A DNA stretch of 64,000 nt, taken from assembly GCA_028826165.1 (NCBI GenBank), contig JAPDFW010000078.1, forward strand, positions 323,351 through 387,350, read 5' to 3'. Under the pieces are notes generated by a model. It did not search any database. It was not told the origin of the DNA and saw only the letters and a program-made list of their open reading frames with translations. This document shows, piece after piece, positions 30,653-63,155 of this stretch; positions within the stretch are counted from its first letter, which is position 1; every line of letters begins with the position of its first letter. Source of the stretch: Anaeramoeba ignava BMAN. Taxonomy: Eukaryota; Protista; Anaeramoebae. Position numbers and translations under genes: made by a program.

Positions 30653-33600
30653 ATGAATCAAAACCAAAATCAAAACGAATTACAAAAACTTAAAGAATTT
30701 TTAATAAAAAAACATCAGAAACAAATTTTATCAATATTTAATAAAAAAAAAACATCAGATATCCAAATTTATTGTGGAATTGATAAAAGAATACTTTATT
30801 GCCATAAATCCATTTTGACTGCTCGTTCATTAACTTTTTTAACCAAAATTTTTGAAAAACAACAGACAAAATTAACATTTAATAATTTTCATTCAAATAT
30901 TGTTACACCAATAATGGAATATATTTATAGTGGAGAATTATCTTTTAATAAAGAAGAATTTGATAAATATTGGGAATTTGCTAATCAAAATAAGTTAAAT
31001 GATGTTAAAAAACAAATTGAACTTGAAATGAAAGAATATCTACAACTTGATAATATTGCTATCATTTATTTCAAAAGTCAAAACATTTCATCTAAATTTC
31101 TTATTGAAAAATGCGAAGAATTTATTATTCCAAATATTCAACAAATTATTCAAAGATTTGATTTCAAAAATTCACAACTTGAACAAAATATCAGTTTTAT
31201 TGGATTAATTTCCTTACATCAATCAATTCAAAACAAATTTCAATTATTACAACTTTTTCAACAAAAATGGAAAGAAAATTCCCAAGAAAACATTTACAAA
31301 TTATTACAAAAACAAAATAAAGAAGGATTAAACCGAAATTCATTAATTAAATTAAACCAAAACGAAACTACTAATTCTCAAGAAAAAGAAGAATATTTTG
31401 ATAATGATAAATTCTTTTCAATTTTATTCACACAAATTCAACAAACACAAACATTTAATTTTCAACAATTTCAACAAATCAAAAAAAAATCATTTAATTT
31501 AAATGAAACCAAATCCATTTTATTAAATTCAAATATTGAAGAAGAACTTAAAGAAGAAGACAAAAGAATAATATCTTATTATAACTTCAATTCAATTAAA
31601 TATCAAACAGAAAAAAGAATTGAAGAAAAAAAAGAACAAATTAAATCAGAAACAAGAAAATTAAAAAGGAAAAAAGAAAAAATTGAACAAATGAAACAAA
31701 AACAAAAACAAGAAATTACTCAATCATTAGATGAAGCAAAAATTTATTTTACAAAACTTAAAAATTCAATTCAAGAAAATGATAAAGGTATAATTTTTTT
31801 CAATTTTTAAAAATAAAAATAAAAACAAAAATCATTTTATTTTATTTAAATTATTTATTTAACAAAAATAATAGATGAAACAAAAGAATTAATGAAAATT
31901 GATATTTCTTTAATTTTTGAATCTATGAATAATTTTCCAACAAATGAATTTATTCAAGAAAATTGTTGTTTAGCTTTAAGAAAATTTACTGATAAAAGAA
32001 AAGAGAGTAAAAACTTTTTTACAAAAACAAAAATTAAGTTTTTAAATTTAGATTTTATTTATTAACAAAAAAATCTTTTCAATTTTATTATTTAAATTTT
32101 CTTTCTTTCTTTTTCTTTTTTGTTTTTACAAAAAAAAAACCAAAACAAATAATAATTATCAATTTAAAATAGGAATTTCATTTAATTTACCAAATTTAAA
32201 TGGATTTGATTTAATTATCAAAGCAATGAATAATTTCCCATTTAACAGATTTCTTCAACTTCAATCTATTTTAATTATTATTAATATTGGAAAAGAAAAC
32301 GGTAAATTCAAAATTAAAAATTAAAAACAAAAATAAATTAATTTTCATTTTTTTTTTGAAATATAAAAAATAAAAAAGAAAACAAAACACAAATTGAAAC
32401 CAATTCTAGAATTGATACAATAATTACAACAATGATTAATTTTACAAATAAAGATACTGAAATTTATAACAAAGGAATTGAAGCTTTAGGAGTTCTAGGT
32501 TTAGAAAAAAAAGGTAAATTTCTTCTCATATTTATTATTTCACAAACAAAATATAAAATTATTTTGATTGAATATAAATTTATTTCAATTTGAAAAACAA
32601 ATATAAATATTAATTTTTATTAAATTTCATAAAACAAAATAGAGATTCAAAAACTATTCAAACAAAAGAAAAGTAAAATTAATTAAAACAACAAAACAAC
32701 AAAATAACTATTTTTTTATTAAAATCTTTCTAAATATAAAAAACAAATATAAATACAATTTAATTTAATTTAATTTAATTTTATTTTTGATTTAGACATT
32801 ACTGAAAAAGAAGAAAAGAAATGGCAATCATTCAAACACAAATATGAAAAATCAAAACATGTAAATAATACAACAAAAATTTATTTATTTTAATTTAAAA
32901 ATAAATTTTCTTTTTTAAAAATTAATTTTTATTTTTTTTTTTTTTTTTTTTATTTTATTAGGGAGAAAAGGTTCGTTTTTATTAATTCATTTCAAAATAT
33001 AAAAATATAAAAATATAATTTATTTCTATTTATTTCAATTTTCAAACGAATTTACAAAAAAATTGAAAATGATTGATTCATTGATAATATTTTTTTTGAA
33101 CATCTTTTCCATAATTTCCAACCTAAAATATATTACATTTTCGTTCTATTCAAATTTAGGAAACTATCTTCCATTTCTTTTCAAAAAAGAAGCAAAAAAT
33201 TGATTTAGGAATTTTGCACTATTTACTGAAACAAAGATATGATCTGAATGAACTTTTTTTTTCAAAAAAACACAAAAAAATTATTTTTCTTTTTAAATTA
33301 AAAATAAATAATAAATTAGGATGTAATTTTTAATTTTAAATAACAAAAATATAAGAGAAAATTATTTAAAATATAAATTAAAGAGAAATTTATTTTTTAA
33401 TTTAATTTAATTTAATTTAATTTAATTTAATTTATTATTTCAAAACAAAAAAAAAGTGGTCTCCAGTTCATTATTTATGTAGGAATGAATCAATTACATT
33501 TGATATGATTAAATTATTAGTTGATAATGGAGCTAATTTTAATTTAAGTGGAGTAAGTTTTTAATTAATTAATTAATTTATTTTCTTTTTCAAAATATTA

Positions 33601-63155: not shown

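Follow-up and report, generated by a model that had tools for sequence, protein, structure and literature searches.

Comparison of gene copies at an Anaeramoeba ignava BMAN locus indicated that the AG-NNN-GTAA sites scattered between its ankyrin exons are very probably real single-codon exons (codon-exons) coding for long, hypervariable inter-repeat loops: the sites show a coding-strand bias, their flanks are like those of true introns, few of them contain stops, their splice dinucleotides are virtually invariant and they are located where the ankyrin repeat has a gap. The window, that is, the whole stretch of DNA analyzed, is 64,000 nt long, and the region under study occupies 33.3-63.2 kb on its + strand. 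From these sequence comparisons we consider it moderately probable that the window holds one copy of a multi-copy (BTB)-ARM-ankyrin gene, in which strings of codon-exons form inter-repeat loops diversified at the DNA level. The features of the window copy are listed below; codons found in other copies (C25, C42, C67, C108, C142) are given after the semicolon.

30653..31786, + strand, first coding exon of public model P0001 ("protein aardvark"), BTB (Pfam BTB E=3e-12); 100% identical to P0001
31874..32860, + strand, five further P0001 exons, ARM-like, ending ...KSKH at 32860; exact peptide mapping
33160..33252, + strand, degenerate ankyrin-like exon; AG acceptor upstream, no GT donor until 33323
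33320..33322, + strand, codon-exon GAT (D); D codon-exon at the equivalent place in C93
33457..33552, + strand, ankyrin exon A, 32 aa; from the Pfam profile and copy comparison
36948..36950, + strand, codon-exon AGA (R); unchanged in 5 copies
37069..37071, + strand, codon-exon TGG (W); GTG or TTG in other copies
37212..37214, + strand, codon-exon GCT (A); CCT or ATT in other copies
38451..38458, + strand, damaged codon-exon AG-AT-GTAA (2 nt); CAT in C108 and C142, TTT in C25
40229..40231, + strand, codon-exon AAA (K); CCA in C108 and C142
40355..40357, + strand, codon-exon AAT (N); GAT in C108
40470..40482, + strand, lost codon-exon, AG gone; intact AG-GAT-GTAA in C142, AG-TGG-GTAA in C108
40549..40551, + strand, codon-exon GAT (D); unchanged in 3 copies
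40676..40683, + strand, damaged codon-exon AG-GA-GTAA (2 nt); TAT in C142, TTT in C108
42207..42209, + strand, codon-exon TAT (Y)
45944..45946, + strand, codon-exon TAT (Y); unchanged in 3 copies
46065..46067, + strand, codon-exon GAT (D); invariant, exon B starts 81 nt on
46149..46244, + strand, ankyrin exon B, 32 aa; one double substitution in C42 and C108, AGA to CAA (R to Q)
49662..49664, + strand, codon-exon AAA (K); identical in C42
50224..50226, + strand, codon-exon TCT (S); GAT in C42
50322..50324, + strand, codon-exon AGA (R); identical in C42
51226..51228, + strand, codon-exon TAT (Y); AGT in C42
58580..58582, + strand, codon-exon GAA (E); GAT in C42
58757..58766, + strand, damaged codon-exon AG-GATG-GTAA (4 nt); AG-TTG-GTAA in C42
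58831..58833, + strand, codon-exon AGA (R); identical in C42
62951..62953, + strand, codon-exon GGT (G); TAT in C67, codon alone deleted in C42, leaving AG|GTAA
63060..63155, + strand, ankyrin exon C, 32 aa; window and contig end 845 nt downstream

Ankyrin exons A, B and C are each 96 nt long, open, preceded by AG and followed by GTAA, and all exons neighbouring codon-exons are in phase 0. In a profile search the three exons matched Pfam Ank (PF00023) / Ank_3 (PF13606), with Ank_3 scores of 22.3, 18.7 and 22.4 for A, B and C, respectively (cut-off 22.3); multi-repeat relatives reached E=1e-98. The ankyrin exons cover positions 3-31 of the 33 in the Ank profile, with a 2-residue insertion, so that about three residues are missing at each junction; the codon-exon sites coincide with the spot where these residues are absent. 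In every copy the three exons remain open. Exon A showed a single difference in 480 aligned nt over five copies, where 7.5 would be expected.

The original prediction had placed three 96-nt ankyrin exons at spacings of 12.6 and 16.8 kb, in exact agreement with the gaps of 12,596 nt between A and B and 16,815 nt between B and C. These two "introns" are chains of introns, some of them kilobases long, with AT-rich low-complexity fill, and this filler is absent from the compact paralog C93. The LINE relics reported for the gaps could not be upheld: the sole long open frame (35155-35631, minus strand) had no Pfam match. Searching the long gaps by tblastn with the three exons as queries revealed no hidden or decayed 96-nt ankyrin exon at E<0.01. 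A single weak fragment was seen with these queries near 36855.

Within 33.3-63.2 kb, AG|NNN|GTAA occurs 17 times on the + strand and twice on the minus strand. The positions, the residues (D; R W A K N D Y Y D; K S R Y E R G) and the absence of stop codons from the 17 sites were exactly as predicted. The predicted spike at a 3-nt spacer on the sense strand was also found: when the spacer was varied from 0 to 12 nt, no other length gave more than 6 sites. The + strand of the region contains 82 GTAA sequences, of which 17 have AG exactly 5 nt upstream, against an average of 1.3 for 38 other offsets; the earlier guess of 60-70 GTAA was not far from this number. Over the whole window and both strands, 28 sites were counted against 7.7 +/- 2.5 in dinucleotide shuffles, none of 100 shuffles reaching 28. 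AG|GTAA sites (spacer 0), considered as candidate recursive splice points, were not enriched, with 2 per strand. When 72 distinct sites were pooled, a stop codon was present in only one (P=0.002), and the codons had a G+C content of 29% versus 10% in the flanks (P=3e-17). In 17 of 17 sites the flanks (AAAT-AG / GTAA-AT) resemble the genuine introns of P0001, whose donors are GTAAAT, GTAAAA and GTATAA and whose acceptors are ATAG, AAAG and TTAG.

The 33.3-63.2 kb region belongs to a multi-copy unit present in at least six copies; its boundary is at about 33251, homology in the other copies beginning at 33251-33259. The level of substitution between the window and copies C42, C108, C142, C25, C57 and C67 is 0.7-2.0%. 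The substitutions are concentrated in the three nucleotides of the codon, with 20 in 92 nt versus 1.63 expected (Poisson P=1.5e-15), a rate approximately 12 times the background. The surrounding AG and GTAA showed 1 substitution in 184 nt, and the downstream flank 2 in 704 nt versus 8.1 expected. All the codon changes are residue changes, mainly through codon positions 1 and 2. The diversification of the loop codons that had been proposed is observed between copies, and the measured diversity is carried by the paralogs' DNA.

The 9-10 nt AG-GAT-GTAA(T) at 33320 is present in the window copy and missing from five others. The tree of copies used for polarising this indel at 33318 was star-like and gave no polarity; the D codon-exon at the equivalent place in the distant paralog C93 suggests that the indel is a loss in the other copies. 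A 13.5-kb stretch of C42 is absent from the window at 33046/33251, C42 carries frameshifted pseudo-exons, and the copies lie at contig ends.

The adjoining contig C67 (C67:1-2975) overlaps the window at 61021-64000 with 97% identity and extends the gene by 8 codon-exons, followed by a terminal ankyrin exon with a stop codon (C67:26000-26155). At C67:6864-8230 a 152-nt tandem repeat of 8.6 copies was found, in which the unit is one intron plus one codon-exon. These tandem units are near-identical outside the codon: the right flanks of adjacent units differ at 3 of 348 positions and their codons at 12 of 18. Among the window arrays, the search for recent tandem duplicates yielded a sole similar pair, 50222/50320. 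Satellite arrays resembling the intron before exon C (on C92, C93 and C126) do not contain the AG-NNN-GTAA motif.

Arrays of this kind were also seen in the compact paralog C93 (public model P0022), a single-copy gene in the genome, with 24 sites on the coding strand and none on the other. In C93, 9 and 8 consecutive codon-exons occupy two junctions, separated by introns of 57-105 nt. The last junction contains 8 codon-exons both in the C67 continuation and in C93, where the exons around it lie at C93:128609-128704 and C93:127755-127937 on the minus strand. Searches of protein collections with the BTB exon and P0022, looking for transcript-derived proteins, returned genome-annotation models only.

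Public model P0001 splices from 32860 to exon A and stops just past it. Paralogs P0012, P0022 and P0044 combine ARM and ankyrin parts, and models P0002-P0005 stop short of the ankyrin part. The counterpart of 33160..33252 is a real exon in P0022 and P0044. In the window this linking exon lacks a donor, and the repeat-unit boundary at 33251 falls between the BTB/ARM part and exon A. A BTB-ankyrin connection appears plausible from the architecture of the family and is broken or uncertain in the window copy.

In our preferred reading, that of DNA-diversified loops, each 32-residue ankyrin block would correspond to one 96-nt phase-0 exon. Between blocks, the hairpin or loop would be pieced together from consecutive single-codon exons, every one of them bounded by an AG acceptor and a GTAA donor of its own. 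All codon-exons would probably be included serially by ordinary intron-defined splicing. The loops of the ankyrin repeats would then be about 8-12 residues long, with many D, Y, K, G, R, P, F and W. The units of codon-exon plus intron multiply in tandem, after which the three coding bases change far quicker than the surrounding intron and the splice signals are retained. This could be due to diversifying selection on a binding loop or to some process aimed at the three bases. In the window copy, the arrays have been spread by kilobases of AT-rich low-complexity sequence. Several observations stand against this reading. A canonical repeat needs 3 residues, not 8-12; 3-nt exons would lie between multi-kb introns in a genome whose usual intron is about 100 nt; and the window codon-exons of 2, 2 and 4 nt would break the frame if spliced in, which fits a dead copy, exon skipping or an assembly error. 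One-base indels and the precise 3-nt codon loss are also located within the codon-exon spots, a pattern more suggestive of a mutational hotspot than of selection.

The choice by splicing put forward in the original prediction, in which skipping, whether regulated or stochastic, leaves each transcript with one or a few codon-exons at every junction and so yields a Dscam-like combinatorial loop library, is quite unlikely. Since all exons are multiples of 3 and in phase 0, any subset would keep the frame; the arrays carry 8-12 codons versus about 3 for a canonical repeat, the damaged window units of 2 and 4 nt would do no harm if skipped, and Schistosoma micro-exon genes make variants likewise. 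However, adjacent codon-exons are separated by canonical GT-AG introns of normal size (57-140 nt), so that nothing enforces exclusion; C93 has 8-9 such exons in a row. No selector- or docking-like sequence is common to the units, one pair apart: local alignment between units gave a mean of 20.0 versus 16.6 +/- 10.1 for random sequence, with no common element beyond the splice consensus. The equal number of last-junction codon-exons in two distant paralogs and the location of the measurable variation between gene copies also argue against a choice by splicing.

It is doubtful, although less so, that the codon-exons are real in the family and the window locus is a dead, repeat-bloated relic, with nothing between A and C made as protein and only the public model ending just past exon A left. 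The four damaged codon-exons, which are confined to the window copy and because of which the full protein may no longer be made, are in agreement with this, as are the donorless exon at 33160, the C42 stretch missing from the window and the pseudo-exons of C42 itself, introns of up to 7.3 kb versus about 80 nt in the compact paralog, and the contig-end location of the copies. On the other hand, A, B and C are open in every copy, exon A has changed less than the sequence around it, and between copies hardly any change affects the splice dinucleotides at the 17 sites; random decay would not target three codon bases. Very improbable is the idea that the sites are not exons and that a process acting on DNA, such as a mobile-element joint or nuclease site, has its footprints or hotspots in ankyrin introns. 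Substitutions, 1-nt indels, the precise 3-nt loss and the precise 9-10-nt presence/absence all fall within the motif, and hypervariability continues in a damaged-looking copy; these points speak for it. Yet the sites lie strictly on the coding strand and are restricted to gene spans, avoid stops, have a coding-like composition and flanks like true splice sites, and are positioned so as to complete the ankyrin repeat. The 40.2-40.7 kb cluster proved not to be a dispersed repeat: it has three true copies, and the remaining matches (65-71%, on both strands) are composition noise, as the query matches its own antisense. An extension of the DNA-diversified reading, that the codon-exon is a purpose-built diversification cassette, appears unlikely; it would combine tandem unit growth, targeted codon replacement (hotspot or cassette exchange at AG-GTAA) and occasional skipping into a natural DARPin-like ankyrin-loop repertoire that would recognise proteins of symbionts, prey or pathogens and may sit on BTB adaptors.

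The layout of this gene is extreme and undescribed, and shares features with several known systems. Dscam1 clusters consist of full-size paralogous exons, one of which is chosen each time through docking/selector RNA pairing. Both there and in the layout proposed here, alternative coding units are arrayed between constant exons and are proposed to diversify a recognition surface; unlike in Dscam1, the units here have no selector-like element in common, and their introns are of the usual length. DARPins carry randomised residues at hairpin and helix positions of their ankyrin repeats. As in DARPins and BTB-ankyrin adaptors, the variable residues here are located in the inter-repeat loop, the ligand-contact site of ankyrins, and the family has BTB and ARM-like parts; the predicted loops are 5-9 residues longer than in canonical ankyrin, and binding, Cullin-3 association and any target are putative.

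The earlier statement that no equivalent is known has to be amended, given the micro-exon genes (MEGs) of Schistosoma mansoni, the nearest analogue so far described. These contain numerous tiny exons, most of them symmetric (the abstract gives 3-81 bp, the text 6-81 bp), and introns of 100 to approximately 5000 bp, are troublesome for automatic annotation, and form duplication-expanded families which serve protein variation, including by alternative splicing (PMC10526429, PMC10399815). Very short symmetric exons in duplicated families are common to both systems. A typical MEG exon measures 15 bp, and such exons, placed between conventional terminal exons, supply most of a protein that is small, secreted and for the most part disordered; here each micro-exon is exactly one codon, the strings lie inside a folded repeat scaffold, and most residues are carried by the 96-nt ankyrin exons. 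Variation here was measured between DNA copies, and in MEGs it arises also by splicing. Single 3-nt microexons have been described in animals and plants, for example in cytohesin-1, Drosophila homothorax and MAP4K5, and plant microexons are of 15 nt or less (PMC6314551, PMC7392893, PMC8632122, PMC8831610). The codon-exons resemble them as putative one-codon spliceosomal exons, often missed by annotation, with canonical AG/GT borders on the coding strand and the frame kept (phase 0, one stop in 72), the three 2- or 4-nt window sites excepted. The known examples are isolated, conserved and usually regulated cassettes, whereas here 8-12 stand in series at each junction of a repeat protein, with hypervariable codons.

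If RNA confirms these exons, this would be the most fragmented protein-coding layout known to us, in which a single organism devotes a separate exon to each codon of whole loops across many of its genes. Runs of 3-nt exons would then be routinely handled by intron-defined splicing, and the public A. ignava proteome would be wrong for a large gene family, as its models have a repeat period of 32 residues versus 35 in relatives without the codon-exon layout (A. flamelloides P0010, metagenomic P0032). For the study of gene-structure evolution it would also provide a case of exon-plus-intron units that can be seen multiplying in tandem. The combination of fixed splice signals with a codon changing 12 times faster than its intron between copies, and far more between tandem units, would be a marker of strong diversifying selection or of a new targeted mutation process, and points to a recognition function in an organism with bacterial symbionts.

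Three 96-nt ankyrin exons are found in the window, each of them open, with AG in front and GTAA behind:

33457-33552, + strand, ankyrin exon A
46149-46244, + strand, ankyrin exon B
63060-63155, + strand, ankyrin exon C

Searched one at a time, the three exons align to Pfam Ank/Ank_3 from profile position 3 to 31 (of 33) and contain two inserted residues, which leaves each junction about three profile positions short. The original prediction placed 17 single-codon microexons (AG-NNN-GTAA sites read as 3-nt exons, here called codon-exons) before and between them. This observation was confirmed: the positions, the + strand and the residues are all correct, and none of the 17 codons is a stop. 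The expected sense-strand spike at a spacer of 3 nt was found when spacers of 0-12 nt were scanned, with 17 sites on the + strand and 2 on the minus strand, every other spacer giving at most 6. AG lies exactly 5 nt upstream of 17 of the 82 + strand GTAA sequences, compared with a mean of 1.3 for 38 other offsets. For the whole window, 28 sites were counted versus 7.7 +/- 2.5 in shuffled sequence. The genome of A. ignava is reported to be 80.65% A+T and its introns 91.86% A+T (PMC11550330); the sites have the same flanks (AAAT-AG, GTAA-A/T) as the introns that the public model places between the neighbouring BTB/ARM exons. Zero-length units, AG abutting GTAA, occur at 44047 and 48908 (+) inside two multi-kilobase introns and are conserved in the copies on contigs C108 and C42. 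They could mark sites of recursive splicing, though the opposite strand has just as many.

The region from 33251 onward is repeated on several contigs of the same assembly:

C42, collinear as far as the end of the window, with large indels
C108, covering window 33259-48090
C142, covering window 34322-41775
C67, first 2975 nt overlapping window 61021-64000 at 97%
C25, C57 and C51, further copies

Substitution distances between copies are 0.7-2.0%, the BLAST "divergence" of 3-7% consisting mostly of indels in A/T runs, and the background substitution rate is 1.1% at A/T sites and 2.7-3.1% at G/C sites. Comparison of the copies gave 20 substitutions in 92 aligned nt for the codon enclosed by AG and GTAA (1.63 expected, P=1.5e-15), a single one in 184 for the six bases of AG and GTAA themselves, which stay fixed, and 2 in 704 for the 20 nt 3' of the donor (8.1 expected). 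Exon A is also conserved above its surroundings, with 1 difference in 480 nt between copies where 7.5 were expected.

Codons found among copies at variable sites
37067: TGG / GTG / TTG
37210: GCT / CCT / ATT
40227: AAA / CCA
50222: TCT / GAT
51224: TAT / AGT
62949: GGT / TAT

In every listed case at least 10 identical bases flank the codon on each side. Most of the changes fall at codon positions 1 and 2. About half of the sites are invariant among copies (AGA at 36946, 50320 and 58829; GAT at 40547 and 46063; TAT at 45942). A motif-blind scan for clean-flanked double substitutions, homopolymer-boundary shifts excluded, returned mostly these same codons. Among 72 distinct sites there was one stop (P=0.002); codon G+C was 29% versus 10% in the flanks (P=3e-17), TAA, TTA and ATA were never seen, and the dominant residues were D, Y, K, G, R, P, F and W. 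The sole stop-bearing site (window 38097-38104) reads AG-GA-GTAA in the window and C25, AG-TGA-GTAA in C108, and is deleted in C142; it is probably not an exon. The sites of window 33.3-63.2 kb are very probably true single-codon exons.

The window ends where its contig ends. Beyond the overlap, C67 carries eight further sites on the same strand and, at 26000-26155, a terminal ankyrin exon that includes a C-terminal tail and the stop, which argues that the gene very probably runs off the window's contig. Positions 6864-8230 of C67 are a 152-nt tandem repeat of 8.6 copies, in which each unit pairs an intron with a codon-exon; the flanks hardly vary from unit to unit, and the codons read GGT, TTT, ATT, TTT, GAT and GGA. 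In the four best units (GGT, TTT, ATT, GGA), comparison of the 58 nt past the donor gives 3 differences in 348 positions, against 12 in 18 for the codons. Since the units are alike except for the codon, the arrays grow by tandem duplication of the unit, the codon being the part that changes.

A profile-free search with exon C gave matches that included the public A. ignava models P0009, P0012, P0022 and P0044. P0022 (KAJ5069519.1) consists of an ARM-like part, a degenerate ankyrin repeat, A-like, B-like and C-like exons and a terminal exon, which is the order in the window plus C67; the model has a 32-residue period that includes no loop codons. The P0022 gene lies on contig C93 and is compact and single-copy. 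Arrays of codon-exons occur in this gene too: a 3.2-kb stretch contains 24 AG-NNN-GTAA sites on the coding strand and none on the opposite strand, including:

preceding the C-like exon, nine consecutive sites, K T I W P Q A R Y
from the C-like exon to the terminal exon, eight sites, I E Y D G D K Y

Arrays thus appear to be the normal state of the family. Relatives lacking the codon-exon layout, A. flamelloides P0010 and the metagenomic ankyrin-BTB protein P0032, have a 35-residue period (32+3). In other copies of the window unit, an 87-nt ankyrin exon comes after K-F-G in the upstream part. Six codon-exons in a row, separated by introns of 67-147 nt, spell P-P-K-K-E-P on the minus strand of C25, around 12815-13337 (1664-2186 when the first 15 kb are reversed). 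Strings of codon-exons are thus found outside ankyrin hairpins as well and may encode linkers.

The original prediction also proposed a Dscam-like choice among codon-exons, and this part was not supported. In C93 the introns between codon-exons are 57-105 nt, similar to the other introns of the gene; a comparison of units revealed no common selector-like element; and the last junction has eight codon-exons both in C93 and on C67. Because of these ordinary introns, the lack of such an element and the equal unit number in two paralogs, constitutive inclusion would be the default expectation, though some exon skipping may occur. Isolated 3-nt exons occur in animals and plants (PMC6314551, PMC7392893, PMC8632122, PMC8831610). 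The nearest described system is that of the Schistosoma micro-exon genes, with 10-20 short exons, mostly multiples of three, and introns of 100-5000 bp, in which variation arises through duplication and alternative splicing (PMC10526429). A literature search on microexons in Anaeramoeba found no paper mentioning them.

The window copy itself looks damaged, with four broken codon-exons:

38451, 2 nt in the window; CAT/CAT/TTT in other copies
40475, AG lost in the window; GAT/TGG in other copies
40676, 2 nt in the window; TAT/TTT in other copies
58757, 4 nt in the window; TTG in other copies

Units of 2, 2 and 4 nt would break the frame if spliced in. There are further signs of rearrangement: no GT donor follows the degenerate ankyrin exon at 33160 until 33323, and 13.5 kb are missing at 33046/33251 relative to C42. 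Within that segment, C42 has two tandem, frameshifted ankyrin pseudo-exons (9289-9360 and 10544-10612), whose N-terminal part (TPIHYL...) is in another frame than the rest. The D unit at 33318, a 9-10-nt stretch, is found in the window copy only; a D codon-exon occupies the corresponding position in C93, so this unit was probably lost from the other copies. At the 62949 site, the codon alone has been precisely lost in C42.

The public model of the window's BTB/ARM gene (P0001, "protein aardvark"), an A. ignava protein 100% identical to the window sequence, reads past the exon A donor into the intron (33553-33561; ...NLSGVSF, stop) and includes neither the D codon-exon nor the GGAGAAAAG unit near 32962, where the window copy is one T shorter; the paralog models P0002-P0005 terminate in read-through of this unit. 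The kilobase gaps between clusters in the window contain AT-rich low-complexity sequence and microsatellites, absent from C93; long microsatellites lie at 52850-53910 (about 1 kb of (AAT)n) and at 41517-41776 and 54380-54640 (TA-rich hexamer-like arrays). The 40.2-40.7 kb cluster itself is not a dispersed repeat: it has three true copies, and the remaining hits are 65-71% identical and fall on both strands. Elsewhere, the window (86% A+T) begins with a 4-kb tract (1-4000; 62% T, G-over-C skew 0.69), followed by a 559-aa intronless gene with RCC1 repeats and then a BTB domain (5180-6859, +). An 848-aa open frame at 17083-19629 (+), in an island of up to 64% G+C in 96-nt windows, had no Pfam match at E<=0.01 and is possibly foreign or mobile DNA.

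The fast change of the codons could be due to selection: every codon change between copies alters the residue, and the codon composition is loop-like. It could instead be the product of a process aimed at the three bases, as 1-nt indels and precise losses of units or codons fall at the same spots, even in a copy that looks dead. The loops encoded by codon-exons undergo diversification, the measurable diversity lying between DNA copies and between tandem units.
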